The notes under the pieces were generated by a model. It made no database searches, was not told the DNA's origin, and was given only the letters and a program-made list of their open reading frames with translations. A stretch of DNA of 64,000 bases, taken from Heterodontus francisci (Eukaryota). A program made the position numbers and the translations under genes. The stretch spans positions 57,971,247-58,035,246 of the forward strand of contig NC_090392.1 in NCBI RefSeq assembly GCF_036365525.1, read 5' to 3'. Below are positions 12,022 through 58,338 of the stretch, one piece after another (within the stretch, counting starts at the first letter, position 1; each line of letters starts with the position of its first letter).

Positions 12022-12394
12022 TTAGTTATTGTAACATCTTCCACCCAATATGGGGTAGAAATTGGACCTCATTGTCCGTATTTTACAGATATAACATGCG
12101 TGTAATGAAGGCCATTTTAAGTGACTAATGTCTGACCCTATATTGGGTGGTGAAATAAATATTGTTTTTTTATGGCAAGAGTAGGATTCACGTGGGACAT
12201 GAGTCTCTGAAAGGGGTTCAGCATAAACGAGCCTCTGGACTAAATGGTACTTTGTAAACAAACAATTAACAGCTTGTGGATGAGAATCCCAAGATGCTCA
12301 AAATTTTGATGTTATTTTGTCCTGATGGGCATCAACATCTTCTATCGTGTCACTTCCACCTGATCTCCCTTGGTTTGCAGGTTCTTTTGAATTC
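12022..12394 (-). CDS. Terminal cytoplasmic exon with in-frame TGA, followed by Tyr motifs
   Basis: Acceptor tgttttttcttattag|G at 12394 (phase 2). NSKEPANQGRSGGSDTIEDVDAHQDKITSKF, TGA (12298-12300), then the same frame stays open to 12022 through TKYHLV and LVYAEP. Confidence 0.6.
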
Positions 12395-12996
12395 CTAATA
12401 AGAAAAAACAAGGCAAATCTGTAAGGGATGATTCTATCATTCAGCTGCAGTGAAGCTCATTTAAGATCAACCTATGAAAATAAAACACGGAATGAGCAAG
12501 GTAATATAATTTATTGAATCAGCTTCTTCCACAGACATTGTACAACCTATCCTGTTGATTCCACCGAATCCATTTAATCTTTACTCCGGCAATGATGAGT
12601 TATATCAATAGACTGTAATTTGCTGCCAATATTGCTCACGAGGTAACGAGCTTTCATGTCAAAAGATGATTGGCTATGTCTTTGACATGTCCACATTTTG
12701 ATACTAAAAAGCTCCAGGACTAGATTGGCTGAAAAAGTGGCTTTATGGCAATCCAATCAAGTTATTGCCCTGTCCTGTAATTATTAAAGCCTCCCAGAGG
12801 TCTGGTAAATTTGAGGATGACATATTGCTTTTAAAACCATGATGCCCAATACGACTGCATTTGCATTATCCATGAAGCTGAGTGGCCTGTACTCTGTGGG
12901 GAAGGAAATGAATATTATTTATGGTCGTGTGTTTGGGAGGATTTTTTTTTGCAGTTTTTGTGACTTATTCTACAGTCTCCATTGATAGTGTGATTT

Positions 12997-14495
12997 CATA
13001 GAGTCATAGAGTCATACAGCATAGAAACAGGCCCTTCGGCCCACCGCGTCCATGCTGACCATAATGCCTATCTATACTAATCCCACCTGCCTGCATTAAT
13101 TTTATATCCCTCTATGCCTTGCTCATTCAAATACCTGTCCAGATGCCTCTTAAATGTTGCTCCTGTGCCTGCCTCCACCACCTCCTCTGGCAGCTCATTC
13201 CAGATACCCACTATTCTTTGTGTGAAAAATTTACTCCTTTGATCCCCTTTAAACCTCCTCCCTCTCACCTTAAATCTATGCCCTCTAGTTTTAGTCACCC
13301 CTACCATGGGAAACAGACTCTGGCTATATACCCTATCTATGCCTCTCATAATTTTATATACCTCTATCATGTCCCCTCTCAGCCTCCTTCACTCCAGGGA
13401 AAACACACCCAGCCTTCTTCACCACCCTGTCTACCTGTGTTGCCACTTTCAGGGAACTATGTACTTGCACCCCAAGGTGTCTCTGCTCAACAACACTCCC
13501 CAGGGCCCTGCCATTCACTGTATATGTCCTACCCTGGTTTAACTTCCCAAAATGCATCACTTCACACTTATCTGCATTAAATTCCATTTGCCAATCCCTT
13601 TCCCACTTTCCCAGTTGATCTATATCCTGCTGTAACCTTAGACAACCTTCTTCACTGACCACTATTCCACCAAGTTTGGTCTCATCTGCAAACTTAGATT
13701 AGATTAGATTAGAGATACAGCACTGAAACAGGCCCTTCGGCCCACCGAGTCTGTGCCGAACATCAACCACCCATTTATACTAATCCTACACTAATCCCAT
13801 ATTTCCCTACCACCTACCTATACTAGTGACAATTTATAATGGCCAATTTACCTATCAACCTGCAAGTCTTTTGGCTTGTGGGAGGAAACCGGAGCACCCG
13901 GAGAAAACCCACGCAGACACAGGGAGAACTTGCAAACTCCACACAGGCAGTACCCGGAATCGAACCCCTACATGCCCCTTACTAATCATGCCCCCTACAT
14001 TCTCATCCAAGTCCTTATATATATGAAAAACAATAGAGGGCCCAGCACCGATCCCTGCGGCACACCACTGGTCACCGGCCTCCAATCCGATAAACAACCC
14101 TCCACTACCACCCTCTGCCTCCTATCACCAAGCCAATTTTGTATCCAATTGGCTAGCTCACCCTGGATCCCATGTGTTCGAACCTTCCGGACCAGCCTAC
14201 CATGCGGGACCTTGTCAAAGGCCTTGCTAAAGTCTATGTAGACAACGTCCACTGCCCTGCCCTCGCCAATCCTCTTGGTCACCTCCTCAAAAAACTCAAT
14301 CAAATTCGTGAGACATGATTTCCCATGCACAAAGCCATGCTGACTATCCCTAATCAGATCTTGCCTTTCCAAATGCATTTAAATCCTATCTCTCAGAATC
14401 CCTTCCAATAACTTTCCCACTACTGATGTAAGGCTCACCAGCCTGTAATTCCCTGGCTTATCCCTGCTGCCCTTCTTAAATAAAGGCACAATATT
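12997..14495 (-). mobile_element. CR1 LINE 3' part with nested SINE
   Basis: RT motifs [25 protein letters not shown], and tail gtcatacagcatagaaacaggcccttcggccc. Confidence 0.9.
13697..13967 (-). mobile_element. HE1/V-type SINE (5'-truncated)
   Basis: Matches the SINE core and tail; (TTAGA)n on the + strand. Confidence 0.9.
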
Positions 14496-14639
14496 AGCTC
14501 TGCAGTGTGCTTTGTTAGTGTGAAGTTCCAGCAAGGAGCCACATCCCAGATGTATCATTTGTAAATTTAGATAGGCTGGGTATGGCCTTGAAATGCACTT
14601 GTCCTGTGTTCATGTTTAGTTTATATACTTCAGTATATA

Positions 14640-15900
14640 GACGGTATTCAATTCACTTTTCTTTTCCACACTACCAACAATTTCCTAAACCCCATTCACC
14701 CTCATCTTCAACAAGTGTGGGGAGGTCACAGAGTCCTTTGTCACCAAGATTGAGACCATCCTTTCAGCTGCTTCTGCTATTTCCCTTCCTCTTGCTTATC
14801 AACTGAACCACCCCCCAGGCTCCCCTGCCCTAAACCCCCAGCTTAGTCTAGTTTCTCTCACACCCCCCCTCATGTCTTCTCGGAGCTCATCTCATCCATG
14901 AGACCCATCATTTTCTACCTTGACAATGATCTCACTAAATTGATGACCATCCAATGTCCCTTCTTGATCTTCAAGCTAGCTGACATTGTAAATGGTTCCA
15001 TCCCCTCAAGTACTTTCCCTCTTTGTTTCAAAACCATTGCTATTACCCTCTCCTCAAAAAAATCACCCTTGATCTCTCTGTCCTTACAAATTATTACCCT
15101 ATCCTACCTCCCTTTTGCTACCAATCTCCAAAATCTGTGCCTTTCTTTCCTGTTTGAATCTGTCCCCTCTGCCATAGCACTGAAACAGCCCCATCCGAAG
15201 TCACAAATTACATCTTCTGTAACTGTTACCAAGATGTACTATCGCATTTCAAGCCTTTTGATCCCTCTGCAGTCTCTTTCGCATCATCCTCTTCTAAAGT
15301 CTCTCCTAGCTCAGTGGTTCCACTCTTACCTATCCAATCTTAGACAGAGCATCTCCAGCAATGTCTTCTCTTCCAATCCCATAACTTTCCTTCCAGACTC
15401 CTCCAGGAATCTATCTTTATGACTGGATTTTAACTTATCTGACCTGCGCAGAGTGGTGTGGTCATCAGGGTGCGGGAAACCCGGATGTCAGGTTTCCACC
15501 ACGTGCTGTAGAGTTTTAACTCCAGAGTGCGTGTGATATCACCCAACAGGTTCCCCGCCCAAAATCCATCCTGATTGACAGGCTTAGCTTACAGTCAGAT
15601 GGCAAGCAGTCTGGAGGAGGCCATAGGCCTCACACTCTGGGGGTTGGGCGTTGGTTAATGGGAATTGACCCTTGAGGGTGGTGTCGATTCTGAGGGTGGG
15701 CTGATGCTGGGACCCTGGTGCGGTGTGGTTGGAGGCCTCGGTGGGGGGGATGTGGGCAAGGTGTGGAGACAAAGTTTGGTGATGTACTAGAGGGGTTTGG
15801 AAGACTTTTGCCACTTCCAGACTAGATTATTTCAATGCTCCCCTGGCAGGCCTCCCATGCTTTACTCTCTGAAATCTTCAGTTCATCTAAACTCTGCTGT
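14640..15900 (+). mobile_element. Decayed L2-like LINE with an internal Harbinger-type MITE fragment (~15420-15810)
   Basis: L2-like RT remnants (WFHSYLSNLRQ). GACTGGATTTT TIR-like start at 15421. Confidence 0.55.
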
Positions 15901-16117
15901 AGGGCATAGTGTAAAAGGAAGTCAGAGTCTGAGGTTTAGAACTTCCTGAACTGTACACTGCAATGATTAAGATTTGTTGCCTGGTATTTGTAAATGTGCA
16001 TGTTGTTTGGCACAAACAGTGCTGTATCAGTGCTGTATCTCTAATCTAAAAAAAATCATCACAGTTGTTTATTCCATCATTTATACTAAAAGGGTAAGAG
16101 GGTATGTTATGACTTAC

Positions 16118-16142
16118 CTACAGTTGCAAGGGCAGTACCAAC
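16118..16142 (-). CDS. 25-nt cytoplasmic micro-exon (G)WYCPCNC(R)
   Basis: Acceptor ttcttcttatttcacag, donor AG|gtaagt. Phase 1 in and phase 2 out match the TM exon and the next exon. Confidence 0.65.
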
Positions 16143-17223
16143 CTGTGAAATAAGAAGAATTATGCATTGTTAAGAATATTCTGCAATGTGAGTTTTTTTT
16201 CAATCTGGACACTTCTTAAGTGCTTCATTGTTGTGGCATTTGGGAAGATATTTCTAAAGCTCTATATTTGATTATTATTGTATTGAAGGCTTTCTTTTGT
16301 GCACTTCCTCTTATTTGTTTCTTCATTGTCTTTATGTATTTGGTGTTTGGTGGTTTTTTTGTTTGCATTGAAACACTATTGCTGCAGAATCCTTTGCCCA
16401 CCGCACATTTACTGGCTGCTACTGTTTTACTGGCAGAGTGCTAATTTTTTAGCATGGGTATTCCCTTTTGGGATTCCTACTGTGCTCCTAGATTTAGAAG
16501 AGGTGAGCAGGCATAATTTCACCTGAGGCATTTGGTACCCTCTTGCCTTTGCCACAGGAGCTACATGTTCAGGATCTACTTTTACTATCTATAGTTTGCG
16601 GGTGAGACTGTAAATAATTATGTGATTGCCTTGACCAGAACTTACACATGCAGGGACAGCTCTGCTGGGCTGTGAAGGTGACCACAGCATTACATTTCAT
16701 TGCTACCATATCCTGCCAAGCTCTTGACTCTGCAGTCCTGATAAAATCTCAGAATTCTTTATTGAAATATAAATACAGCACTTAGACAGCGCATTGCTAA
16801 TAATTTTCAGACATGTATATTTTTATGATCTTATTTCTGCTTAAGCCTCTGTATTTCAGAAGAAATCGAATGTCTACATCTTTCCATATAGTTCCACTAA
16901 TATCTGTGTTTCCCGTCATCCTTTTAAATTACCATTGTTTTCGATTCTGAGATTCAATACTGAATAGCATGCTCATTTATAATTTGCAACATACTATCTC
17001 TCTGACACTTCATTTACTACATCATGCACCCGATCTATATAACAGTTATAATGGTGCTATCATTTTCTCATGATCAATCATTGTAGGAACACTTTATTGG
17101 TGATTTGTTTTCTTTCTTATTCCAAATTCTCTGAACTAAATCACATCAAGCAGTGATTAAGTCAATGCCTATTAAAACTGTCACTTCACATTTGTGCTTC
17201 ACGTCAGCTGTTCGCTAATTTAC

Positions 17224-17307
17224 CTTTCCGTTTACTGCCCCAGATCAGTAATAAAATGACAGAGACCACAAAGATTGGCACTGATATAGATCGGACAGGA
17301 AAGCTAC
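17224..17307 (-). CDS. Transmembrane exon SSFPVRSISVPIFVVSVILLLIWGSKRK
   Basis: 84 nt, strong acceptor ttttctgtcccttcacag and donor G|gtaaat. Hydrophobic stretch followed by a KRK stop-transfer cluster. Confidence 0.82.
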
Positions 17308-17799
17308 CTGTGAAGGGACAGAAAAGTAGTTTGAGCTTCTCATGATCTGCTTCAGTGTAAAAGAATGGTGACAAACACAAGGTAAATGCATTCCTTGTTT
17401 ACTGGCTTAATATAGTATTATCATTACCACTTCTGAATTAAATTTCATTTTCTCCATTAGTACCAGTAGAGGATCTCAGTTCCACCGTGCAAGAGGTAGG
17501 AATATGTATGTCAGTCCTTATTTCTATAATTCAGTGCACCTTGGTAACTGAATATTACTGTTTTAAGCTTAGTACAATCCATTACAGATAAGGGTATTTT
17601 ACTATTACTCCAACCTATCTGTTTATAAGTTGCTTTCTATCAACTTCTATATTTTTCTCAAGAAATGATAGATCAGCTAAAATGTTGCGTTCAACTCTTG
17701 TGACATTTGTCCTGGTGATTTATGACATTTATATCCATATTATAGAATCTTGGGTATGATACACACTTCATGTATCAAGATATTGAATAACACTTTTAA

Positions 17800-18340
17800 T
17801 ATAGAATGAATCATAGAATGGTTACAGCACAGAAGGCGGCCACTCGGTCCATCATGCCTGTGCTGACTCTCTGAAGGAGCAATTCACCTCGTGCCACTCC
17901 ATCACCTTCTTCCCGTAGCCCTGTACATTCTTCCTTTTCAGATAATAATCCAATTCTCTCTTGAATGCCTTGATTGAACCTGCCTATACCACACCCTCAG
18001 GAGGTGTATTCAGATCCTAACAACTCATTCTGTGAAAAAGTTTTTCCTCATGTCGCCATTGCTTCTTTTGCCAATTATCTTAAATCTGTGCCCACTTGTT
18101 CTTGATCCTTCCACCAATGGGAACAGTTTCTCCCTATCTACTCTGTCCAGAGCCCTCATGATTTTGAATACATCTATCAAATCTCCTATCAACCTTCTCT
18201 TCTCTAAAGAAAACAGTCCCAACTTCTCCAATCCATCTACGTAACTAAACTTCCTCATTCCTGGAACCATTCTTGTGAATCTTTTCTGCAACCTCTCTAA
18301 CGCATACACTTAAGTGTGGTGCCCAGAACTGGATGCAATA
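17800..18340 (-). mobile_element. CR1 3' fragment (intronic)
   Basis: ALERLQKRFTRMVPGM..LFSLEKRRL. Confidence 0.85.
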
Positions 18341-19127
18341 CTTGACAATCCCTGTAAAATATTTATACTGGAAGTCAACATTTATAATGACAAAACTTTA
18401 TCTAAATATGAGCAATTCACCATTAACAATTTGTTATGAACCAATCAAATATTTCAAAATGCTTCTTGAAAAATAATTTCATCCACTTGTTTTCCCTATA
18501 ACTAAAATTTCTAATGTCCAAAGTTAGGTTTAAAAGCAATGATTTTTCTTTTAAATTATATATTTCACAATGACAATTAAATTTACTCATTGAGTTGTTT
18601 TTTTTGATACCTCATTTAAATTTTACTTCAAGACCTCAGTCTGCCTCCAAAGCTTGAGAATCAACTGGATTTTTAAAAAATTTTATCTCATGACAGATGG
18701 AAAAAGTTTCAACCACATCTGTGCATTCTGAGCAAGAGCAGTTTGCAAAATTTTCCAGCGTGCAATCGGTGCATCAACATGACTGAAGCAGTTCATTTTG
18801 TCAGGATTTTAGAGTTTGTCAGTTAACTTATATGTAAGTTAAGCTTTTGAGAACACAAGCAAGGTTAGTGCTGTTGAGAAAGAATGAGGATGAAATACGA
18901 TGATGGCAGAGATTAATTATGGCATCAGTGAGGCCAGCAGAAGCAAGAGAGGTGACACCAACAATTCTGTTATTTTGTTTATAATTTATAAATTTATATA
19001 AGATCTAGGAATATTTGTTAAATTGCGAGCTTCTCAGCAATAAAACGGAATTAATTAGTCTTAATATATCTGACATACTGTTTGCACCTTTATATGAAAT
19101 CTAACCTAAAGAAACCTTGCTGACTTT

Positions 19128-19856
19128 GGGCTGAAATTTAAGTAATGGCAGCCCGCACGCATGAGCCTAGCTTCGTGGAGCTGCCGTGATATTAAATGCG
19201 GTGGCTCATTTAAATGATGTGAGGGGCGGGCGGTCTGTCCCTGGCAACGGCACAGGTGCCACTGCGCAGGCGCCGATGCCATTTTTAAAGGGCTTCAAAC
19301 CCTTCACTTCAGTTTAAGTATTTAAAGATATCGGCAGTGTAACTTTATTTTAACAAATTAAATATATGTTTCCAGCCCCTCTCCTACTAGACAGCTCCTT
19401 GCACTCTCCCCCACCAAAATACTTACCTTATGTACCTGACCTTTGCCCCCCGAAAGTTCATCAACTTTAACTTCAACCCCTTCCCACCATTCCCTACACC
19501 AATCAGATTAGTTTAAACCCACTCCTCCCTGCCTTCTCCCGCAATGAGATACTTAACTGCTCCCCCCTCACCACCAGTGTTCCACATCGGATCTCCATAT
19601 GGCCTCAATATCAAAGTGGGACAGACGGCGGGAGTGGGTAAGTAATTAATTTGTTAATTAGCATTTTTAAAAATATGTAAATTCTGCTCCTGTCGCTGAG
19701 TGGTGGGGGGGCCGCCACTAGGCATCGCTGCCACTGCCAATATCAGGCTGGGCCTTCCCGGCGTCCTCTGCCGGAGGCATTTTCTGGCCCCCCTCCCACC
19801 ACAACCCCCGAAGTCGGCGGGGTGGGGGGGGGGAGGGGTGCTGTAAAATGCGCCTC
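19128..19856. mobile_element. Harbinger-type MITE (intronic)
   Basis: GC-rich island bounded by GGGCTGAAATTTA and an imperfect TAAAATGCGCCT. Confidence 0.5.
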
Positions 19857-20532
19857 ATTATGTCAATTTTAGACCATAAGTATAATATCAACTTTTAATA
19901 AGTAAAGCCCAATTTATATTAATTTACTGTGATCTGTTCAAACTACCATTGTCACCTCAGATACGAAGTGTCAGTTATTAACATCTACTTGAGTACCTTG
20001 TATACTTACGTTTAATATTTAAAATGCTGCTAATTGTATTATCATAAAGATCTGTTAGTTCATGATTTCATCTCCTGGATGTCTGTTTGAGGTTAACTCC
20101 TTCTCTCAGCAATGTACTGGTCATTTGAAGGATTATTGGCCACAAACAGATTAATATTCTTCAGACTGGTTAGTGTTCGATGGTTCAAGTGAGGAAAAAT
20201 TAGGTATCTAGTAATCCTCTAGACATAGATGGTAAATCCCTAGTTATTATTGTGATGGGGAATTAAGGTGAAGAAGTTCAGCATTCACCTGGTCTTTAAG
20301 TACTGCACCTTGCATTGTTTATGGCCTTATTAGTCACAGGATTATTTTACTTACAGGGCTGAATTTTAGAGAATCAAATCATTTTGGTTAGGCATGTGAA
20401 AAGGCATTACAAGGATAAAAGATGAGTTAGTGCTTTAAGTTTATAATAAATTACTCTTGTCTTAGTTTGTTCTACACCAAGAATTTGTAATGAAGAAATA
20501 TTCCCTTGTGCAGGTAATATCATTGCACTTAC

Positions 20533-20850
20533 TTCTGAAACCAGATATTATGTATATCCCTACAGCATATTCTTTTAAGTCATATGCATTGTGTGCTCTG
20601 CAAATATAATCTCCACAGTCTGAATCATCAACACTTATTTCCTTCCAGACTGAACTGTTTACTCCAGAAGCCAACTGTGCACTTCCACTTTGCCCCCAGG
20701 ATTTCTTTTTCCAGATAGATGCTGGGTTACTGTCCACTGTACAGTTCAGTTCAAGGAACGACTGGGGCGTAACGTGGATGATGTCGTGGAGCAGTGGATG
20801 GAGCTGATCTGAGTCAGAAGTCCTGTAATATATGACTGGCTGTGGATCAT
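20533..20850 (-). CDS. C2/I-set Ig domain exon
   Basis: 318 nt, phase 1-1 (gattcag|AT ... A|gtaagt). YDPQPVI..LELNCTVDSNPASIW..DCGDYICRAHNAY. Confidence 0.88.
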
Positions 20851-21070
20851 CTGAATCAAAACAACGGAAATGGAAAGTAATTAGTCATATAGGCAGCTTC
20901 AATAAAGCATTGTAGAATTGTGTACACCCGATCAGAGACTAGACAAAACTGACTGGAATTAAAAGCACCAATTGTAGGTATGTCCTTTCTGTAAAAAGAT
21001 AGATATCTTGTATTGTAATAGTTATCTAAGGCCACAGAACAGTTTTAGAAAAAACTACTGGCGTAATACA

Positions 21071-21395
21071 GGCAGTGCAGTGGTTAGCACCGCAGCCTCA
21101 CAGCTCCAGCGACCTGGGTTCAGTTCTGGGTACTGCCTGTGCGGAGTTTGCAAGTTCTCCCTGTGTCTGCGTGGGTTTCCGCCGGGTGCTCCAGTTTCCT
21201 CCCACAGCCAAAGACTTGCAGGTTGATAGGTAAATTGGCCATTGTAAATTGCCCCTAGTGTAGGTAGGTGGTGGGAGAATGGTGGGGATGTGGTAGAGAA
21301 TATGGGGTTAATGTAGGATTAGTATAAATGGGTGGTTGTTGGTCGGCACAGACTCGGTGGGCTGAAGGGCCTGTTTCAGTGCTGTATCTCTAAAT
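21071..21395 (+). mobile_element. HE1/V-type SINE
   Basis: Matches the other SINE copies. Confidence 0.9.
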
Positions 21396-23306: not shown

Positions 23307-23654
23307 AGTTCACATTTAGTGTTATCTGTTTTATTATCCACTCCTTACTTGTCATATGACGGACCTGACAGGTACAGATTGTCCCATGGTCTTGCAAAGT
23401 GGAGATAAAGGTTAATTGACTGGTAATGTTAAATGTGCCATCTGAGTTCCTGAAGGTGGACAGTCTAGTCGTATATCTCACCACAACATCTACTTGTGAA
23501 GATTGAGCATTTTGAGAAATGGTTTGTTCTTGGTGCAGCCATTTAATGGAGATATTCTGAGGATAAAATCCCCCAGCGAGACAGTACAAAACAGATTCAT
23601 TCCCCACCAGTAATTCCTCCTGAGTAATGGAGATTGCTGGAGGAGATGGCGGGA
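23307..23654 (-). CDS. C1-set Ig domain exon
   Basis: 348 nt, phase 1-1 (ttacag|TC ... T|gtcagt). Translation VPPSPPAISI..VLYCLAGGFYPQNISIKW..NSDGTFNITSQLTF..GTICTCQVRH has the C1 signatures CxxxGFYP, W, DGTF and CxVxH. Confidence 0.9.
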
Positions 23655-24262
23655 CTGTAATATACAATGCAAAATATAGCTATGTTGGATGTAAATGCTA
23701 AAGAAAGCAATAACAAAACAACGTCAAGCAAGCTTTACACACTCAATACGTATAACAATTCCATTTCAATAAAGGAATTGCACAGCAGATATTTAGGGAA
23801 TGTAATTTGTATCTCAATCTTGGAAGATCACCTAACCCATTGACTGGCAGAATCACATAAAAACCCTTCCCATTAGTGATAAAAATAGTACTTCAGTTAT
23901 TTATTCTTATGTTTTTTGTCTAAAATGTCAAATTTTGCATGCGGTCCAATGTTGTTTTCAAAGGGATTTTCAGGATTTCACATCTTTCAGCCCAAATTCA
24001 GCAGATGCACATCAATCTGGACCTTACCTCTTCCTGTGCCATGGATCACTGCTGTTATGATAAATGTGCAGTACGTATCTATACTCTCCTTATATTGTAG
24101 TGATGCTTTTTGATTTATGTTGCTACTCTCAGCTGCCAATAGATACCCTGAAATTTCAGAGGATTTATGGCACAATGCCAAAAAGATGTTACTGGATTTT
24201 CAAGCAATGAAAGAACTGAAATTACTGGATTTGTTTGCAAGACTTTGTGAAGTTGAATTATT

Positions 24263-25359: not shown

Positions 25360-26061
25360 CATCAACATGCAATCGTGTTCCAGGTCCACATTTCTCGAAT
25401 GGTGGGTAGACAGTTGGTACCTTCATCTCACAGGTACAATTACTATCAGAGATTTGGAAAGTAACATTTTCAATCTTCAGGAATATAGTACGGCGGCTAA
25501 GAACACCTGCAGCAATGTCAAGGATGCAGGTCGGATTAATGCTTTCACTGAAAATATCAGGGATCCCCGGAGAGCTCTTGTACCAGATTGCACAGATCCA
25601 CAGTGGCGCAGTGGTTAGCACTGTAGCCTCACAGCTCCAGCGACCCGGGTTCAATTCTGGGTACTGCCTGTGTGGAGTTTGCAAGTTTTCCCTGTGTCTG
25701 CGTGGGTTTCCTCTGGGTGCTCCGGTTTCCTCCCACATGCCAAAGACTTGCAGGTTGATAGGTAAATTGGCCATTATAAATTGCCCCAAAGTATAGGTAG
25801 GTGGTAGGGAAATATAGGAACAGGTGGGGATGTGGTAGGAATATGGAATTAGTGTAGGATTAGTATAAATGGGTGGTTGTGGTCAGCACAGACTCGGTGG
25901 GCCGAAGGGCCTGTTTCAGTGCTGTATCTCTAAACTAAACTAAACTAAGATCCAATCACTGTCATTTGCGATGTAATTAAATGTACAGTTTAATGTGACG
26001 GATTTTCCTCGCAGGACGCTGACTAGATGTGGCTGAGTTACCTCCTCAATCACTGGATCAC
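25360..26061 (-). CDS. V-set exon with germline-joined J-like G strand, interrupted by a SINE
   Basis: Acceptor ttccattag|GT at 26061, donor G|gtaaat at 25360. Removing 25601-25954 leaves 348 nt: DPVIEEVTQPHLVSVLRGKSVTLNCTFNYIANDSDWICAIWYKSSPGIPDIFSESINPTCILDIAAGVLSRRTIFLKIENVTFQISDSNCTCEMKVPTVYPPFEKCGPGTRLHVD (B-strand C, C-strand W, F-strand C, GxGTxLxV). Confidence 0.85.
25601..25947 (+). mobile_element. HE1/V-type tRNA SINE inserted in the V exon
   Basis: tRNA-like head, V-core, CR1-like tail and (TAAAC)n end. TSD AGATCCA at 25594-25600 and 25948-25954. Confidence 0.95.
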
Positions 26062-32510: not shown

Positions 32511-35500
32511 CACAAGAACACAAGAAATAGGAGCAGGAGTAGGCCATTCAGCCCCTCGAACCTGCCCCGCCATTCAATAAGATCATGGCTGATCTGTCCC
32601 AGGCCTCAACTTCTCTTTCTGGCCTGCTCGGCATAACCCTCAACTCCCCGAGATTTCAAAAATCTATCTACCTCCTTTTTAAATATTTTTAGTGATCTAG
32701 CCTCCACAATTCTCTGGGGTAGAGAATTCCAGAGATTCACCACCCTATGAGAGAAGAAATTCCATTGCATCTCAGTTTTAAATGTGTGACCCCTTATACT
32801 GTAACTATATCTCCTAGTTCGAGATTCCCCCACCAGTGGAAACATATTCTTAACATCTACCCTGTCAAGCCCCCTTAGAATCTTATATGTTTCAATAAGA
32901 TCACTTTTCATTCTTCTAAACTCCAATGAATAAAGGCCTAACCTGTTTAGCCATTCTTGATAAGAGAACCCCTTCATCCCAGGAATCAGCCTAGTGAATC
33001 CTTTCTGAACTGCCTTCAATGCCAGTATATCCTTCCTTAAATACAGGGACCAAAACTGTACACAGTACTCCAGATGTGGCCTCACCAATACCCTGTACAG
33101 TTGTAATAAGACTTCCATATTTTTAAACTCTAACCCCCTAGCAATCAAAACCAAAATTCCATTTACCTTTCTAATTACCTGTTGCACCTTAGAGATACAG
33201 CACTGAAACAGGCCCTTCGGCCCACCGTCTGTGCCGACCATCAACCACCCATTTATACTAATCCTACACTAATTCCATATTCCTACCACATCCCCACCTG
33301 TCCCTATATTTCCCTACCACCTACCTAAACTAGGGGCAATTTATAATGGCCAATTAACCTATCAACCAGCAAGTCTTTGGCATGTGGGAGGAAACCGGAG
33401 CACCCTGAGGAAACCCACGCAGACACAGGGAGAACTTGCAAACTCCACACAGGCAGTACCCAGAATTGAACCCGGGTCGCTGGAGCTGTGAGGCTGCGGT
33501 GCTAACCACTGCGCCACTGTGCCGCCCACTGTGCATGCTGACTTTTTGTGTTTCCTGTACAAGAACACCCAGATCCCTCTGTACTGCAGTGTTTTGGAGT
33601 CTTTTTCCATCTAAATAATAATCTGCCTTTTTATTCTTCCTACCAAAGTGGATTACCTCACACTTTCCTACATTGAACACTATCTGCCAAGTTTTTGTCC
33701 ACTCCCTTAACCTATCTATATCCCCTTGCAGATTCTTTGTGTCCTAATCACAACATGCCTTCCCACCTATTTTTGTATCATCAGCAAATTTGGATACTCT
33801 ACACTCTGTCCCTTCCTCCAAGTCATTAATATTGATAGTAAATAGTTCAGGTCCTCGGACTGCTCCTTGTGTCACCCCACTAGTTACGGCTTTCCAACCT
33901 GAAAAAGACCCACTGATCCCGACTCTCTGCCTTCTGTGTGTTAGCCAATCTTCAATCCATGCCAACACATTACCCCCAATACCCTGAGCTCTTATTTTGT
34001 GTAATAACCTTTTATGTGGTACCTTATCGAACAGAATCACAGAATAAGACAGTGCAGAAGAGGCCCTTCGGCCCATCGAGTCTGCACCGATGCATTAAAG
34101 ACACCTGACCTGTCTACCTAATCCCATTTTCCAGCACTTGGCCCATAGCCTTGAATGTTATGACATGCCAAGTGCTCATCCAGGTACTTTTTAAAGGCTG
34201 TGAGGCAACCCGCCTCTACTACCCTCCCAGGCAGTGCATTCCAAACTGACACAACCCTCTGGGTAAAAAAGTTCTTCCTCAAATCCCCCTTAAATCTCCT
34301 GCCCCTCATCTTAAACTTGTGTCCCCTAGTAACTGCCCCTTCAACTAAGGGGAACAGCTGCTCCCTATCCACCCTGTCCATGCCCCTCATAATCTTGTAC
34401 ACCTCGATCAGGTCACCCCTCAGTCTTCTCTGCTCCAGCGAAAACAACCCCAGCCTATCCAACCTCTCTTCACAGCTTAAATGTTCCATCCCAGGCATCA
34501 TCCTGGTGAATCACCTCTGCACCCCCTCCAGTGCAATCACATCCTTCCAATAATGTGGCGACCAGAATTGCACACAGTACTCTAGCTGTGGCCTTACCAA
34601 AGTTCTATACAACTCCAACATGACCTCCCTCCTTTTGTAACCTATGCCTCGATTGATAAAGGCTAGTGTCCCATATGCCTTTTTCACCACCCTATTAACC
34701 TGCCCTTCTGCCTTCAGAGAACGCCTTCTGAAAATCCAAATACATTACATCTACTGGTTCCCCTTTATCCTCTCTGTTTGTTATATCCTCAAAGAACTCT
34801 AACAAATTTGTCAAACATGATTTCCCTTTCATAAAACCATGTTGGCTCTGCTTGATTGCATTATGTTTTTTTTAAATGTCCTGTTATTTCTTCCTTAATA
34901 ATGGACTAGCATTTTCCCAATGACAGATGTTAAGCTAACTGGTCTATAGTTTCCTGCTTTCTGTCTCCCTCCTTTCTTGAATAGGGGCGTCACATTAGCA
35001 GTTTTCCAATCTGCTGGTACCCTACCGGAATCCAGTGAGTTTTGGTATATTATGACCAATGCCTCTACTATCTCTGCAGCCACTTCTTTTAAAACCCTTG
35101 GATGCAGGCTATCAGGTCCTGGCGACTTGTCTGTCTTTAGTCCCATCAGTTTTTCCAGTACCTTTTCCCTCATGATAGAGATTGTTACAAGTTCCTCCCT
35201 CCCATTTACACCTTGCTCATCTATTATTATTGGGATGTTTATAGTATCCTCCACCGTGAAGACCGATGCAAAATATTGGTTAAATTATCTGCCATTTCCC
35301 TGTTCCCGGTTATTAATTCCCCAGTCTCATCCTCTAAGCGTCCCACATTTACTTTAGCTACTCTCTTCCTTTTTATATACCTGTAGAAGCTCTTACTGTT
35401 TGCTTTTATATTTCTTGCCAAATTACTCTCAATCAATTTTCTCTCTCAATTAGTTTTTCAGTCATCCACTGCTGGTTTCTAAAAAATTCCCAATCCTCTG

Positions 35501-36350: not shown

Positions 36351-36474
36351 TCATATTTATTTATTTTTATCTGCTGTCACTTTAAATTGAACAGATATAT
36401 GTAGAACATGCTCCTTGAAACTAAGTCAATTATGTTAAACAAAAATAATCAAGAGTATCAATAGAAGTAATTAC

Positions 36475-36813: not shown

Positions 36814-37269
36814 CTGAAGTAATGCTCGGATTAGAAAAAAGTAAACATAACACCAATATTTAAAAGGGTCCAGCCAGGTGAAACATCGATTTTAAAGGTT
36901 CTCAGGCCTTTCATTGAATCGACTAGGACCTTCAGAAACATTTTTCTAAAATCTTGTTAATGTCTTGAAGATGTTGGCTACCCTGCCCTTGCTCTTATAA
37001 TGTTAAGATCAGCCATGATCTCATTGAATGGCAGAACAGGCTCGAGGGACTAAATGGACACCTGTTCTTATGTTAAATATGAATCATCCATGAACAGAGC
37101 CCTGTGCATGCATTCAAGCATATGTGCACACAGCTCCAGTGTAATGAATTTACAATGTGAAGTGCAGTCAGCAGTGTATCTCAGATCTGTTAGCTAATCA
37201 TCACACCCGATAGATAATAGTTTGAGTGCTATGTGTGGTATTCCAGCACCCTCTAATGTTAACTATATA

Positions 37270-37626
37270 AACAATTGTCTAATTGTAAATTTCTAGTCAG
37301 TCCTGTTTCATCTACAACCAGGACATTGATTATCATCATCACACATTGTAAATATAATGAGTCTTGGATACAAACAGTATCACATTTCAACAATCCAACA
37401 CAGCTGCGATAAAAACACTTCAATGTCAGAAATGTAGCTAATGCTATTCCCCTTTAAGATAGGTGGCAGCATAATTGTTAGTTGTTATGTCATGGTCAAA
37501 GTAAAGCCCCTGTATCAGTCTGTGTGGATCCAGTCAGTATATTTAAATATACAGTTCAATGTGATGAACTGAAATCTCAAGGCCACTGACTAGACGCTGT
37601 AAAGACACCGCCCCAATAAGGGACAC
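37270..37626 (-). pseudogene. Decayed paralogous V exon (copy 1)
   Basis: Same acceptor (ttccattag|GT) and visible nucleotide similarity to the 26061 V exon. Encodes ITLNCIFKYTDWIHTD*YRG with frameshifts. 3' end approximate. Confidence 0.7.
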
Positions 37627-39299
37627 CTAATGGAATAACGTGTCTCGTCTGCTGAGCATAACCTGAGATCTAATCACACACTTTTACCTGTGGTATTATA
37701 AAGAAAACCCATTTCAACAAAATGAAAGAAAAAGCAAGGAACATCATGAGCACATGGGGGGTGGGGGGGGGGGGGGGGGGGGGCGTGGTGCGGGGGCAGA
37801 ATTTTAACCTGGAAGAGCATGAGGGTTTGGTGCAGGTGAAGTTTAAAACCAGCGTAAATTTGAGCACGTCAGAAGCCAGCTCCAACCTGCCAACTTCCAC
37901 ATTTGACTCCAGCATGTGAGGCAGCTTGCACATAACCCTCTTGGGAGTATTGAGTTACCTATTAACATATGGTAATTGCTCAATTGGAGTGACATTTCAA
38001 CTCACTTTCAAATTTAATGGTGCATCCATGCATTGCCTGATCTTCCTGAAACTTATCATTGAAAACAAAATGAGAACACAACAGCAATTGAAGGGGGTGA
38101 TTAAAACTCATGAAAATACTACAATGAATAATCAGTACACCCAGCTGCTTTCTTATCTACTAGTCAGAAAAGGTTTGTTCATGGCGTTTTTACTGAGAGT
38201 TTTATTTCTACACTTTGGGGGTTTTCTGAATTCAAACAGGATGGCACCTCAGCAACTTTAGATTGGACCTCAGACATAGAGAAATACTAGGAGTATCAGC
38301 AGCAGCATGCTGTTAAAAGACAGCATCTAGACATCAGAGAGGGGAGCAGCAGAGGGGTGCTGCTTGCAGGAGGCACTAGCCACAACATAGAGTATACAGG
38401 AAGAGGCTGGGTTTTTGATATACATTTTTATTTAATATTTGTGGCTGTAAGTCACCACAGATGTTAATTTGTAAACTTTAAGAATGATGTAGCAAGAAAC
38501 AATTGTTTTATCAATCCATGTTTTGTTTAAACTGTAACATTGATGATGGATTAAGCCACTGATCAATACATGTTCACCAATTTTTGTTGCGTAAGAGCAT
38601 CAAAGGATATGTAGAAAAGGCAGATAAATGGAGTCAAGTTGCAGATCAGCCAGGATCCAATAGAATGACAATTCTACAGATTTGAAGGGCTGAATGGCCT
38701 ACTCCTGCTCCTATGTCAACGTATAATTATACTATCAATTTTACATCAAAACAGCACAAAAATAGAAGTATAATTTTGGTATAGATAAGCAATCTGACTC
38801 CCTAATGAACAATACAAGAACTGAAACACTGCAGTCAGTAGTCACAGACTGTTTGGAGTTTACCTGAGTTGCAGTATAACTCCAGCCAGGTGAAACATCT
38901 ATTGAAAAGGTTCCCAGGCCTTTCATTGAATCTCCTGGGAACTTCAGAAACATCTTTCTAAAATCTTGTTAATGTTTGAAGATGTTGGCTACCCTGCCAT
39001 TGCTCTTATAATGTTAAGATCAGCCATGATCTCATTGAATGGCAGAACAGGGTCGAGGGACTAAATGGCCTACTCCTGTTTGTATGCTCCTTTGTTAAAT
39101 ATGAATCATCCATGAACAGAGCTTTGTGCATGCATTCAAGCATATGTGCACACAGCTCCAGTGTAATCAATTTACAATGTGAGGTGCAGTCAGCAGTGTA
39201 TCTCAGATCTGCTTGTTGATCATCACACCCTATAGCTAACAGTTTGAGTGCTACATGTGGTATTCCAGCACCCTCTAATATTAACGACATAAACAATTG

Positions 39300-40561
39300 T
39301 CTAATTGTAAAATTCTAACTATGTCCTGTTCCATCTACAACCAGGACATTGATTATCATCACCACACATTGTAAATACTGTTACGACCAGCTCAGAAAGG
39401 TCGTAACAGAAAGGGGACCCTCTCAGCCTTCATCTGGTCTTATCGTAACACGGTTTAATTTTAAACACAGCTTGTTTTTAACTCCCCCCTTGGTGAATCC
39501 TTGTTCACCACTTTCCAATTATAAGGCAAAGAAACCAGCACAAACAGGCTTTCTTAGGTTTAAAGAAGAAAGATTGAAATTTACTAAACTTAAGCTTAAA
39601 CTCTAATTCCTTTGCCTCCTACGGATACACAATGTGCCCACACTAGCATGCATACGCGATGCACACATGCAAATAGAGACAGAAAAGAGCAGAAGAAAAA
39701 TAAAATGGAAAGGTTTAAGGCAATAGCTGAAGAATTTTTGTTACAGTTCTTCGAGCTCACTGTAGAGTCCTTGATTGTAGGTAGATCCTGCTTTTCATTG
39801 GGGCCCAGTATTTTTCTTAAACTTTGTTTGCTGTAGGAGACTTTTCTCTCTTGGGGTTCATGTGTCTTCAGTCGATTCAGAGGCTTGTGAGAAAGAGATG
39901 GAAGCAGACAGGAGAGATCTTCTCAGTCCAGGAGCAAACAGCCACTCTCTGTTCAAACTGTTTGTACAATTCAGAAAAACCCAAGTTGCCAAGCAAGTTA
40001 GTCATGTGACTAACTGGTCTGACCACGTCTTAGTTCGTATCACCTTAGCAGTCTCTGGAATGCTCCTCTTACACACAATACCTGATGATCAAGGACTATT
40101 GTGGGTTGAATGTGTCAGGGAATGGTCCTTTGTCCTTCCAAGCGCCAACTGTTAATAAGCAAATGTCTTTTCCAGCCACAGCTGATCTGTTTAACAAGTC
40201 CTTTCTTCACTCCAGTAACAGTTTAAAATCAATGTTCATGATAAAATTAAAGTGCCTCATTCATGACAGGTGGGGGCCGAGCATGACAATATAATGAGGT
40301 TTGGATATAAACAGGATCACATTTCAACAATCCAACACAGCTGCTAGAAACACTTCAATGTCAGAAATGTAGTTCATGCAATTTCCCTTTAAGATAGATT
40401 GATGCAGAATTGTTAGTTGTTATGTCATGGTCAAAGTAAAGTCCCTGTACCAGTCTGTGTGGATCCAGTTAGTATATTTAAATATACAGTTCAATGTGAT
40501 GAACTGAAATCTCAAGACCACCAACTAGACGCGATAAAAACACTGCCCCAATAAGGGACAC
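39300..40561 (-). pseudogene. Decayed paralogous V exon (copy 2), split by a solo LTR
   Basis: Duplicate of 37270-37626; reads ITLNCIFKYTNWIHTDWYRD. LTR at 39379-40288 lies inside it. 3' end approximate. Confidence 0.7.
39379..40288 (-). mobile_element. Gypsy solo LTR
   Basis: TGTTAC...ATGACA termini, imperfect 4-bp TSD (ATAC/ATAT), absent from the duplicate at ~37350, related to the LTR at 58339. Confidence 0.88.
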
Positions 40562-40768
40562 CTAATGGAATAAAGTATCTCCTCTGATGAGCATAACCTG
40601 AGACCTAATGACACACTTTTACCTGTGGTATTATAAAGAAAACCATATCAACAAAATGAGAGAAGAAACAAGGAACATCATGAGCACATGGGGTGGGGTT
40701 GGGGGTGGTGGTGGTGGGGGGTGATGGGGACAACCGGGTTTGGGGAGCGGTGGTAGTTTGGTGGTGGG

Positions 40769-43700
40769 GGGTAGAATTTTAACTTGGAAGAGCATGAGGG
40801 TTTGAGTGCAGGTGAAGTTTAAAACCAGCAAAAATGTGAGCACGTCCAGAAGCCAGCTCCAACCTGCCAACTTCCACATTTGACTCGAGCACGTGAGGCA
40901 ACTTACACATAACCCTCTTGGGAGTATTGAGTTACCTATTAACATTTGGTAATCCACCAATTGAAGTGAGACTTCAACTCACGTTCAAATTTAATGGTGC
41001 ATCCATGCATTGCCTGATCTTCCTGAAACTCAGCATTGAAAACAAAGTGAGAACGCAACAGCAATTGAAGGGGGTGTTTAAAACTCATGAAAATACTACA
41101 ATGAATAATTAGTACTCACAACTGCTTTCTTACCTACTCGTCAGAAAGGGTTTGCTCACAGCAATTTTGCTAAGAGTTTTCTTTCTACACATTGGGGGGG
41201 TTTTCTGAATTCCATCAGGCTGGCACCTCAGCAACTTTAGATTAGACCTCAGACAGGGAGCAATATTAGGAGCATGCTGTTAAGAGACAGCATCTAGACA
41301 TCAGAGAGGGGAGCAGCAGAGGGGTGCTGCTTTCAGGAGGCACTAACCACAACACAGAGTTTACAGGAAGAGGCTGGGTTTCATTGACATAACAGAGCAG
41401 CAATGCTTGAGGAAACTCAGGTTCTCATGTCAGGTGGTCTCAGACAGCTGCAGCCTCCTGGAAGAAGACTTGCTTCTGCTGGACCTGGTGGCCACACTTT
41501 ACCAGTGGTTGTGAAAGTTGTCACTGCGCTCACCATTTTTGCCTCTGGATTCTTCTTGGGCTTTGCTGGGGACACAACCAGGATGTCTCAGTCAATGGTC
41601 CACAGATGTATGACAGAGGTGACTAATAGGTTGTTTGCCAGGGCTGGGAGGTATCTGAATTTCACTTGTGATGACATCGGTCAGGTTTTCATGTCTGTCT
41701 GGCTTTCCATGGAAGCAGTGTGTCATTGACTACACACATGTGGCAATCCAGGCACCCCCACATCAACCAGGAATATTCATCAACTGCAAGGGTTTCCATT
41801 CCATCAATGTGCAGCTGGTGTCCAACCACAAAAAGTGATTTCTGCAGGTTGTGGGCAAGATACATGGGGAGCTGCCATGATGCTTTCACACTGCGGTGGT
41901 CCAAATTCCTTAACTTCTTTGGAGCTGGAAGCAGGCATGAGGGGTGGCTGCTGGGAGACAAAGGATACCCACTTCAAACTTAGCTGATGATGCCCATCAG
42001 AAATCCGACCAATGAAGCCCAAAAGTGCTACAATGAATGCCATATGACCACCAGATGTGTGATCAAATAAGCCATTAGCATGCTGAAGTTGTGCTTCAGA
42101 TGCCTAGACAGACCCTTCAATCCACACCAGCCAGGATATGCAAAATGGTCATGATGTGCTGCATTCTGCACAACATCGTTCTTCAGCAAGGTTTGGTCCC
42201 ACAGGAGGAACAAGTCACAGAGCAAAGGAACATAGGAACATAGCAGATCATTGGCAGATGATTTGGAGTACGAGGAAGATGAGGAGGAAGGTGATGAGGG
42301 AAATGCAGCACCAGCTTCTCACATTGCTGTCTGGGATTTTGGTGATGCCCTTATTACTGCAAGGTTTATTTAGGTTGCATCTATGGACCAATATCAGAAC
42401 TACATGGAATGGCCACTCTCTGGACAACTGCCACCACCCCCATGCTACTGAGATAAAGCAGTCCTGCAAACAACCAACCACCCCTTACACATTCACCTAT
42501 TGGTCACTGTCTATTCAAGTCTTCCCATTGATTATCAAGCAAGTTGAAAGGCAACTTGCTACCGAGCAACCAAGAAAGGGCAGGATGGGAAAGCATTGGA
42601 AAATAATAATCTTCATGTGATTGAATTAAAGAACACATACATAACATTTTCTCATTCATCCATGTGCATTCTCTTTATGACTATAAAAATTCACTCTTCC
42701 ATTTCCTGCTGTTCCTATGTGGTGCAACCCCTGTCGTTTCAGCACAGGTAGAGGCAGGCTGCTCAGATCCCTGATCTGACTGCTCCGCTACTCCTGGCCT
42801 ATGACCTCTGGGTTTTAGAGCCTGTGAAGGCCCTGCCAAAGATTGCCCCACTTGCTCCATTATAGGGGCAGACTTGACCATCAGGATGAGGCAGCATGTC
42901 GGCTACTGACTGGAGGGGAGCAATAAGTGAGAAGTAGAAATGTTTTTAGTGGAGTCCCCACTTCTATGTCACCTTTTGCCATCATCACTGCTACCACTGT
43001 GCTGGAGAACACTCTGATGCAGGTCAGTGCAGCACTGTAAGGCCAAAGTTAAGGTAGCTGTTTGAGATGGCATGATGTTGGCATCCAGACTGTGCACAAC
43101 CCCGGTCAATGCATCCACTCATTTGATTGTTGCATTTGATGATCCATGGAGTTGGCCACTCTATCCAGACAAGAACACATCATTGCAATGCCCTGCAACA
43201 TTAACCCACTCATGCTTGAGGTGGACTTCTCGACTCTCTCTGTGATCATGGTCAGTGCGCTTGGAAGGCCTGTCAGGACATCACACATTCTCTGTTGCTG
43301 CTCAATGCTTATTCTTTTTATTGATGGCCCCCTGGATATTGGATCTGCATCCAGCTGAGCAGAGCTTGGAGACGGCTGAACCCTCTGCAAGCGAACTTTC
43401 CAAAGCTGTGCCAATCATCACCATCTGCTCTTGCTCACTTGTGAAGTGTGAAACCCCAGTTGAAAACCCAATTATCTGTCTTAATGAAATATGAGTATCT
43501 GTGCTGAGATAGCAGATGGATAGCTGGGAATTTGAGCAAGTGCATAGGAAGCGAAGGATGTGTTCGCTTGCAAGGTAAGTAGATTTGATGTGATGGAGAA
43601 TGCTTGACAAGGCAGACTTGGGGTGCTGCTAACAGCAGGATGTCGGTGAATATGCAACTGATTCACATTTTCTGACCTGGTTATGGCATTAAAACACTTT

Positions 43701-44120
43701 CTGTATTGAAGCCAGGAGTGCAGCACAATTCTGATCTCCTGGGCCACCTTCAGCCACACCTTCTTTATGACAGCAGTAGGTTTCTTCCTCAGGCTGCTGG
43801 CACAGCACATCTCTCATTTGTTGGTCACAGCCCCCAGCAATACATCAAGGGAGGCATCACTGAAGCAGGACACAGCCTTTGAGCATCCTGAATCCATTGT
43901 CACAACTTAACTTCAGTTGTTTCAAGCTCTTAACACCTCTGAATTGCACTTTTGGACTGGCCGTCCAAATACTAGAGTTAAGATTGCATCATGTGTGTCT
44001 TCATCACAGAAGCTGCCATGCAATCAACACTAAACTGGAAGTAAAATAATAATGAGCTGGCTGTGTTAAAGTGCCACTGACAGATGCATTGAACTTACTT
44101 TGGGATTTCCCACATGATAT
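40769..44120. mobile_element. Decayed autonomous-type PIF/Harbinger transposon (nuclease on +, Myb/SANT gene on -); truncated duplicate at ~37794-38415
   Basis: HARBI1-like VVVKVVTALTIFASG, GSCHDAF and LLGDKGYP. Myb-like KKVWLKVAQEI..WLQYRKCFN on -. Right end approximate. Confidence 0.85.
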
Positions 44121-44282
44121 CAGGATTTTTTTTCCGTTGAAGCAAGGAGGCTGAGGGAGATTTATTTGATAGATTGATAGGAAGGACCTATTTCCATTAG
44201 CAGAGAGGTCTATAACCAGGGGGGTGTAGATTTATAGTAATTGTTGGAAGGAATAGAGGGGAGTTTATTTATTTATTTTTAT

Positions 44283-44623
44283 TTAGAGATACAGCACTGA
44301 AACAGGCCCTTCGGCCCACCGAGTCTGTGCCGACCATCAACCACCCATTTATACTAATTCTACACTAATCCCATATTCCTACCACATCCCCACCTGTCCC
44401 TATATTTCCCTACCAAAAACCTATACTAGGAGCAATTTACAATGGCCAATTTACCTATCAACCTGCAAGTCTTTGGCATGTGGGAGGAAACCGGAGCACC
44501 CGGAGGAAACCCACGCAGACACAGGGAGAACTTGCAAACTCCGCACAGGCAGTACCCAGAATTGAACCTGGGTCGCTGGAGCTGTGAGGCTGCGGTGATA
44601 ACCACTGTGCCACTGTGCCGCCC
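44283..44623 (-). mobile_element. HE1/V-type SINE nested in a plus-strand CR1 3' fragment (~44135-44870)
   Basis: Full-length SINE; the flanks are CR1 3'-end sequence. Confidence 0.9.
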
Positions 44624-45469
44624 ATGATGTTGAGAAGTTTTTTTCACCCAGAGGGTGGTGGTGGTCTGGAACTCACTGCCTGAAAGGGTTGTAGAGGCAG
44701 AAATCCTCATCGCATTCAAAAAACCACTTGGATGTGCACTTGAGGTGCCTTAACCTACAGGGCTATGGACCAAGTGCTGGATGTTGGGATTAGGCTGGAT
44801 AGCTGGATAGCTGTTTTCCGGACAGCACAGACATGATGGGCCAAATGGTCTCCTTATGTGCCATAAATCTTTCTACCTTTCCATATTTCTATGGGACATC
44901 CCCCACTCCCAACATGCTTCTGAGTTAACATTAAGGCCCGAGCGTTTAAGTGAATTTTATAGTATATGATCTCAATACGGAAACTAAATCATTGTTATAA
45001 CATGACATGTTAGAAGTTAAGTAATAAACTAGTATACATTTTCACCATAAAAATTCTATACAGCTGCAAAATGTTACATTTTGAACTGTTGTATGTTTGT
45101 TTGGTACAAACATTGTGAACATTATGGATTTCAGTGCCCAATCCTCCTTCTGAACTTCAATCCACAAGAAGATTCCAGCAAAATCTGCACACTATAAAAG
45201 TTGGGCAAAGCTGTAATATATATTAGTAAGGAATTTTTGCATTACTTTATTCTATTTAAGCATGAAGCATTTAAGGACCTAAGTGGAAACTTTGTATCAA
45301 AATAATACATTTAAATTATATTAATTACCATAGAATTTTATTTGTATGATTCAATAGTGTTACTCTTAACTGTTTAGCATTCAGCATTAGCAAACATTTT
45401 CAGTAAGTCGGAATCGGAATCAGATCTATAATAGAGATTGGATTAAAGGAGTTTAATCACAGCACTAAC

Positions 45470-45527
45470 CTGCTACACAATTCCATGTTAGAAGGAACAC
45501 CATCAGCTGCAGTAACATGCTCTCCAT
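45470..45527 (-). CDS. Signal-peptide (leader) exon MESMLLQLMVFLLTWNCVA(G)
   Basis: ATG at 45527, 19 codons with a hydrophobic core ending CVA-G, phase-1 donor G|gttagt at 45470/45469. Confidence 0.7.
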
Positions 45528-46960: not shown

Positions 46961-46984
46961 TCCCAATGTTTTGGACTGTTTTCT

Positions 46985-48370: not shown

Positions 48371-48374
48371 TGTA

Positions 48375-58300: not shown

Positions 58301-58338
58301 AAAGATACCTTACAATGAGTTTATTTGGTTCTGTACTA

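Follow-up and report, generated by a model that had tools for sequence, protein, structure and literature searches.

A SINE-interrupted shark gene joining germline VJ-type, C1-set and I-set domains, a probable member of an unnamed elasmobranch family

Few genes are known in which a V domain of germline VJ type is coupled to a true C1-set domain: SIRP, UrIg/UrIg2 and PRARP, beside immunoglobulin (Ig), T-cell receptor (TCR) and major histocompatibility complex (MHC)-related proteins. Each of these VJ-C1 genes serves the reasoning on what the RAG transposon invaded. In 2019, Fu et al. (cited in PMC10751288) reportedly described the PRARPs as non-rearranging V(J)-bearing membrane genes of the immunoglobulin superfamily (IgSF) in bony vertebrates, proposed to be relics of antigen-receptor precursors. 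The PRARPs are not known to carry a membrane-proximal I-set domain. The SIRPs (PDB 2wng, 4i2x) are type I membrane proteins of V-C1-C1 layout, in which the V domain does not rearrange, carries a J-like GxGTxLxV motif and directly precedes a C1-set domain. Both the SIRP and the Siglec families were dated to tetrapods by a name-based survey of 2026 (PMC13262535). UrIg and UrIg2 (PDB 9dmx) are elasmobranch genes that do not rearrange, in which one exon encodes VJ and C1-type domains come next; they carry several C1 domains, nine in UrIg2 of the nurse shark, and no I-set domain (Flajnik et al. 2023; Sci Adv 2025, PMC12227049). Here, a gene on the minus strand of a 64,000-nucleotide (nt) stretch of the shark Heterodontus francisci (contig NC_090392.1, positions 57,971,247 to 58,035,246; hereafter the window) is described, in which VJ and C1 are followed by an I-set/C2 domain, a transmembrane (TM) segment and a short tail.

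The gene is real: it is a seven-exon shark membrane-protein gene with a match far beyond chance. The window probably contains one member of an unnamed family that is conserved in sharks and rays, likely has relatives in eels and has a putative role in adhesion or recognition; in the copy at hand, a short interspersed nuclear element (SINE) splits the V exon and antisense RNA overlaps the locus. The features of the gene are the following (window coordinates):

45470-45527, minus strand: exon 1, ATG (exactly at 45527) and signal peptide MESMLLQLMVFLLTWNCVA; phase-1 donor CAG/GTTAGT.
25360-26061, minus strand: exon 2, VJ-type V domain, 348 nt without the SINE; in frame over 26059-25949 and 25594-25361, ending in GPGTRLHV(D); donor G/GTAAAT.
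25601-25947, plus strand: tRNA-derived SINE of 347 nt within exon 2, antisense to the gene, between the B strand/complementarity-determining region 1 (CDR1) and the invariant Trp.
23307-23654, minus strand: exon 3, C1-set domain, GFYPQNISIKW ... CTCQVRH; phase 1-1.
20533-20850, minus strand: exon 4, I-set/C2 domain (third Ig domain), LELNCTVDSNPAS--IW ... GDYICRAHN, containing CTVDSNP; donor AGAA/GTAAGT; phase 1-1.
17224-17307, minus strand: exon 5, stalk and TM segment, SFPVRSISVPIFVVSVILLLIWGSKRK; phase 1-1; membrane span without charged residue.
16118-16142, minus strand: exon 6, 25 nt, juxtamembrane Cys cluster (G)WYCPCNC(R); acceptor ttcacag/, donor /GTAAGT.
12298-12394, minus strand: exon 7, NSKEPANQGRSGGSDTIEDVDAHQDKITSKF and stop codon TGA (12300-12298); C-terminus T-S-K-F; bounds fixed by homologues.

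Stop-to-stop translation and direct reading revealed canonical AG/GT borders for all seven exons, and exons 1 to 5 are mutually compatible in phase 1. With the SINE and one copy of its target-site duplication (TSD) set aside, the exons sum to 1278 nt, that is 425 codons and a stop. Exon 6 was located by a scan for AG..GT guided by the tails of homologues, the counterparts of which read DRYGPCNCR, DRYCPCNSR and GWCGPCNSG. The exons were searched singly and never as a joined protein; a natural homologue, P0005 from a sawshark (408 aa), was used as whole-protein stand-in. P0005 joins six segments matching the window in gene order, namely the two V halves (E 9.8e-20 and 9e-14), C1 (1.8e-50), C2 (6.7e-33), TM (4.6e-7) and tail (6e-5). 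Identity amounts to 72% and 49% in the V halves and to 73% in C1. The seven-exon gene proposed in an initial annotation of the letters alone, spanning 12022-45527, was thereby partly borne out. Its start is exactly an ATG, and the count of seven is correct once the 25-nt exon at 16142-16118 (GWYCPCNCR) is added; the last exon as drawn and the lower end of the span had to be given up, coding stopping at the TGA. The open reading frame (ORF) at 12261-12022, taken there as terminal, was rejected, as it lies beyond the conserved stop codon. For the leader, a scan of 26062-47500 delivered three leader-like ORFs, among which exon 1 alone has the upstream position of this gene. The assignment is of moderate confidence, because no family homologue offers a leader for comparison.

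Homologues were sought by a HMMER scan with the C1 exon over 1.84 billion representative proteins. Five close proteins were obtained with 59-73% identity. Together with their cluster members they come from Pristiophorus japonicus, Hemiscyllium ocellatum, Chiloscyllium plagiosum, Hemitrygon akajei, Scyliorhinus torazame and a Logan contig, to which S. canicula was added by a later profile search. The C1 exon scored 125-168 bits against the sawshark, bamboo shark, epaulette shark, stingray and Logan contig sequences, and <=51 bits against all else. Family members (P0005, P0009, P0151/P0007 and P0130/P0159) were compared with the window, which shares with them a collinear series of V, C1, I-set, TM and CxCN exon and a C-terminal [S/T]-x-[F/L], at 50-73% identity. 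Outside the elasmobranchs, two eel proteins (Conger and Synaphobranchus) match, with the layout VJ-C1-C1-C2-TM. The remaining outer matches of C1 include uncharacterised proteins of lungfish, frog, alligator and coelacanth, a SIRP-like protein of turtle and B7-H6 of mole-rat. In a C1-domain tree calculated by IQ-TREE (111 columns), the window sequence is placed with the elasmobranch family (95/93), the eels join this group (94/89), and the whole lies next to B7H6-type C1 domains (86/87).

The names given to the homologues in databases are automatic and inconsistent (Siglec-10/11, sialoadhesin-like, syg-2-like, MAG-like). In the RefSeq models P0007, P0009, P0151, P0130 and P0159 the V domain is absent or the N-terminus spurious, P0009 beginning with a reverse-transcriptase fragment; the sawshark model is the sole exception. 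None of the public gene models of the family carries a signal peptide. Since the models lack V or have a spurious N-terminus, the VJ domain of the family is hidden in current annotation. No published description of the family was found in the literature searched, whose coverage of shark B7H6/NKp30, UrIg and PRARP is incomplete. The initial annotation was thus right about the architecture and about the missing family name. Its restriction of the family to cartilaginous fish has to be loosened for the two eels, and it was silent on the broken V exon, which is the key fact for this copy.

The V exon carries WYxxxPG, the F-strand motif D-x-x-x-x-C and a complete GxGTxLxV; a single exon holds all three. 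Without the SINE it reads ...SVTLNCTFNYIANDSDWI/CAIWYKSSPG...FLKIENVTFQISDSNCTCEMKVPTVYPPFEKCGPGTRLHVD, with an ORF continuous to GPGTRLHV. The V-set score reaches the cut-off in the intact P0005 (35.4 bits), and the halves of the window V domain alone give 15.5 bits. Over its residues 14-229, P0005 aligns in one stretch with the V, J and C parts of an Ig kappa chain. The top PDB match of P0005 is SIRP-alpha, whose GAGTELSV is aligned to GPGTRLHV. When residues 1-120 of P0005, its V domain, were put to a word-indexed search, only P0005 itself was recovered. A scan for a heptamer, a 12- or 23-bp spacer and a nonamer, as in a recombination signal sequence (RSS), found none in or near the V exon. 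The non-rearranging VJ exon claimed at the outset is therefore confirmed by an uninterrupted reading into GPGTRLHV without RSS, the SINE being set aside.

Two RSS-like words were encountered on the way. The heptamer consensus CACAGTG occurs at 25594-25607 (plus strand) inside the V exon, where it is made up of the last bases of the TSD and the head of the SINE; with no nonamer at 12 or 23 bp, it is a coincidence of the tRNA-like 5' end of the SINE. An isolated match in intron 1 at 41722 (minus strand; CACACTG, 23-bp spacer, ATGAAAACC) is most likely due to chance. Intron 1 also holds, by tblastn and blastn, a decayed 5' part of a V exon with stops at 37540-37646 (minus strand; ITLNCIFKYTDWIH...) and a second decayed remnant of the 5' half, likewise with stops, at approximately 40447-40524 (minus strand). 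Both remnants lie inside a tandem duplication of about 2.9 kb, and a ...ttccattag acceptor precedes each of them.

The C1-set domain reported to follow VJ was clearly recovered. Pfam C1-set (PF07654) matched exon 3 with 53.9 bits (2.3e-14; gathering cut-off 21) versus 33.4 bits for the CD80-like C2-set (C2-set_2), and the hallmarks FYPxxIxVxW and CxVxH are represented by GFYPQNISIKW and CTCQVRH. The AlphaFold2 (AF2) model of this exon had a predicted local distance difference test (pLDDT) value of 49. The nearest named relatives of the family are B7-H6 for the C1 domain and SIRP for V-C1, at 26-30% identity. It is unlikely, yet deserves weighing, that the proteins are B7-H6-type ligands, of which they would form the elasmobranch (and eel) branch and which would pair with the multi-copy shark NKp30 (NCR3), rather than receptors of the SIRP kind. 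B7-H6/NCR3LG1 (PDB 6yjp, 3pv6, 4zso) shares the V-C1 order; among single PDB domains its C1 domain (the human one, 46.9 bits) matches the window C1 best, a frog 'NCR3 ligand 1-like' protein (51.4 bits) comes nearest outside the family, and family and eels together are sister to B7H6-type C1 domains in the tree. As a ligand-type protein it would also be expected to have neither an immunoreceptor tyrosine-based inhibitory motif (ITIM) nor an activation motif (ITAM), and the tail found here has none. Against this, whole-protein searches recover SIRP first, and the support of 86/87 is modest for an Ig tree of 111 columns. The V domain here has the full GxGTxLxV and WYxxxPG, whereas B7-H6 aligns only in part, from residue 70 on. 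Finally, B7-H6 has a two-domain ectodomain and an unrelated tail, so that the extra I-set domain and the tail of the family have no counterpart in it.

The comparison with SIRP is closest at the level of the whole protein. SIRP-alpha and SIRP-beta are the best named matches (26-28% identity over about 240 aa), and the J-like motif directly before a C1-set domain and the type I membrane topology are common to both. The third domain differs, being I-set/C2 here, and so does the membrane-proximal part: SIRPs have either a tail with ITIM (alpha type) or a charged/basic TM residue for DAP12 (beta type), both absent here. Moreover, the C1 tree does not group the family with the SIRP-like sequence included. 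An identity with UrIg/UrIg2, which share the elasmobranch host and the single-exon VJ before a C1-type domain, was rejected: one C1 domain is present here, the match to 9dmx consists of three weak C1 matches (19.6, 9.0 and 16.3 bits), and the tail differs.

Exon 4 was assigned by Pfam to Ig_3/I-set. In the initial annotation this domain had been called Siglec/MAG-like, which reduces to a generic I-set resemblance: among the PDB matches of domain 3, titin and obscurin score above MAG (E 0.49), and the PDB profile search was dominated by multi-I-set proteins (DSCAM, titin, contactins). That the family would be Siglecs, as the RefSeq names Siglec-10, Siglec-11, sialoadhesin-like and MAG-like have it, is scarcely credible. 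MAG and CD22 do occur among fold and sequence hits for domains 2-3. Siglecs, however, have C2-set domains after V and no C1-set domain, which is present here. The V domain also has ordinary B-F cysteines, a J-like G strand and no Arg in the F strand (NCTCEMKV in the window, NYTCVVVI in P0005).

The TM segment (ISVPIFVVSVILLLIWG) is uncharged and is followed by a tail of about 40 aa (GWYCPCNCRNSKEPANQGRSGGSDTIEDVDAHQDKITSKF). Neither ITIM, ITAM nor the switch motif (ITSM) was found in the tails of the window and of its homologues, nor any YxxL/I/V in ITIM context. The usual immune 'signalling tail', which had been part of the original proposal and relied on a last exon past the stop codon, is not supported, because there is no tyrosine motif context and no charged TM residue. 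Three features are conserved in the tail: a CxCN[C/S] cluster close to the membrane, the acidic run EDxD and the C-terminal [S/T]-x-[F/L]. The homologues end in ...EDADAHEDKITEF, ...EDVGNQEDKIMTSEF, ...EDADVHEEITSKL and ...EDVDVQKKITTSEL, and the window in ...EDVDAHQDKITSKF followed by TGA; the C-terminal set across the family comprises ITEF, TSEF, TSKL, TSEL and TSKF. This pattern fits that of class I PDZ ligands and looks like a putative PDZ ligand.

Such an end, together with a three-Ig ectodomain and a single TM segment, is also typical of the nectin/Necl (CADM) adhesion molecules. Consequently, it was considered whether the gene belongs to them, with a second domain that merely looks like C1; we regard this as quite improbable. 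Besides the V-C-C-TM layout, the nectin-1 and Necl-4 ectodomains are among the top hits of a Foldseek search with the AF2 model of P0005 (MAG, nectin-1, CD22, Necl-4), CADM1 is among the Atlas structural neighbours, and CADM3 matches with E 4e-7. The Foldseek hits have a root mean square deviation of 11-16 Å and reflect a generic three-Ig ectodomain only; the model behind them, built from five sequences, is poor in the V domain (pLDDT 26-42), and the CADM3 similarity is marginal. No nectin was present in the best 60 PDB sequence hits. As read from the letters, the V domain lacks the signature motifs of the PVR family, namely (V/I)(S/T)Q in strand C and AX6G, and the J-like motif is foreign to nectins. 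The second domain is a true C1-set domain by its score (53.9 versus 33.4 bits) and by its FYPxxIxIxW and CxVxH hallmarks.

The SINE in exon 2 is flanked by a perfect 7-bp TSD (TGGATCT at 25594-25600 and 25948-25954); no Rfam match was obtained for its region. Translation runs into a stop two codons into the element ("...DSDWILV*"), and therefore this copy, as assembled, cannot make a V-bearing protein. Usable splice sites for a clean removal of the SINE were not seen on reading the sequence. Six further copies of the same SINE family lie in the window at 3317-3640, 13695-13967, 21077-21394, 33189-33519, 44272-44615 and 49967-50301, with 82-96% identity to the V-exon copy; three of them are in introns of this gene (90-96%), and four window copies altogether are 90-96% identical to it. 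At several sites the V-exon SINE departs from what most genomic copies read, which indicates that it is young yet not brand new. The other exons of this copy show no sign of long decay by the count of invariant positions and by C1 branch length. Family-invariant positions are changed at 1/50 in C1 and 1/32 in C2, fewer than in most homologues, and the terminal branch of the window in the C1 tree is short (0.042). As the other exons are well conserved, the break looks recent.

It is possible, although we lean against it, that the gene is functional and still encodes a receptor, either because the sequenced animal carries a polymorphic or haplotype-specific SINE insertion or because the V exon is skipped in frame. 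Such skipping would keep the frame because both ends of the V exon are in phase 1. The intact and conservative other exons, the perfect TSD and one RNA contig compatible with sense splicing from C2 to TM (see below) are in line with this. However, the SINE junction at 25601 is also crossed by a contig of run X1, and no empty-site joint is among the joints listed. The divergence of the SINE from the family majority points in the same direction, as does domain 3, which has lost 2 aa in this copy alone and scores low for I-set (13.5 bits versus 51.2 bits in P0005).

The RNA evidence consists of Logan contigs of uncertain type, from two runs (X1 and X2) of the same sample. Both runs contain plus-strand GT..AG joints at 20977/23964 and 24070/26015, that is antisense to the gene, with good polypyrimidine acceptors. 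The depth over the antisense exons was about 110-157 versus 10-28 over the introns. A further plus-strand acceptor lies at about 20647, its upstream sequence being unplaced. The transcript spans 20649-20977, 23964-24070 and 26015 to about 26560 (plus strand), with at least one more exon below 20400. No long ORF was found in its three exons, and an AATAAA at about 26543 stands just ahead of the contig ends. Its course takes in the C2 exon as well as the 5' end of the V exon, and its depth in run X1 is far above any sense signal. The locus thus yields mainly a spliced, probably polyadenylated antisense non-coding RNA. The C1 exon was covered only by an unspliced contig of 2.6 kb. In sense direction, one contig of X2 (depth 2.8) ends at 20531, two bases past the C2 donor, with 33 unplaced letters. 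It is compatible with a C2-to-TM sense splice, because the TM exon and the intron both begin with GTA, and is weak evidence for sense splicing.

The window flanks (1-12000 and 46000-64000) contain transposon-type ORFs only, without a neighbouring gene.

Several points weigh against the reading of the window as a broken copy of a conserved adhesion or recognition family. None of the sense joints L-V, V-C1 and C1-C2 was seen in runs X1 and X2. The leader is placed 19.4 kb upstream of the V exon, at the far end of an intron 1 of that length, and has no homologue backing. This copy has odd residues of possible relevance, with Cys for the Tyr of YxC and an extra Cys before GPG, and reads DCG where other shark copies have DSG (YNG in the stingray). 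Its domain 3 has a deletion of 2 aa before the conserved Trp that is absent from all homologues. Skipping of the V exon could yield a V-less product, and the SINE may be heterozygous or polymorphic, with the gene working in other individuals. Finally, the proposed PDZ and palmitoylation roles are deduced from motifs.

Taken together, the family probably encodes a type I membrane glycoprotein with a VJ-type V domain, one C1-set domain, a membrane-proximal I-set/C2 domain, an uncharged TM segment and a short tail. It may act in cell-surface recognition or adhesion, as ligand or counter-receptor. The juxtamembrane cysteines would be palmitoylated and the C-terminus tethered to PDZ scaffolds. In this the family would differ from the classical immune receptors with ITIM or ITAM. 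In the window copy, the SINE insertion would be recent and either inactivating or polymorphic.

The window copy itself, a SINE-interrupted paralogue overlapped by antisense RNA, adds little biology. The family adds a further architecture to the few known VJ-C1 genes, in which VJ-C1 is continued by an I-set domain and a PDZ-type tail without ITIM; sharks and rays conserve the family, whose C1 domain is closest to that of B7-H6. Surveys based on names would miss it, because the public names (Siglec-10/11, syg-2-like) are wrong. More speculatively, and with little confidence on our part, the family may represent an old lineage of non-rearranging VJ-C1 genes that arose before the split of cartilaginous and bony fish and survives in elasmobranchs and eels, with C1 as sister to B7-H6 and, after it, a membrane-proximal domain of nectin or Siglec style and a PDZ tail. 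It would then be a living intermediate between adhesion-type IgSF proteins and the V-C1 unit behind antigen receptors, SIRP and B7-H6. If true, sharks and rays would have kept an old VJ-C1 lineage, which may have a receptor or ligand partner to itself, shark NKp30 being one candidate.

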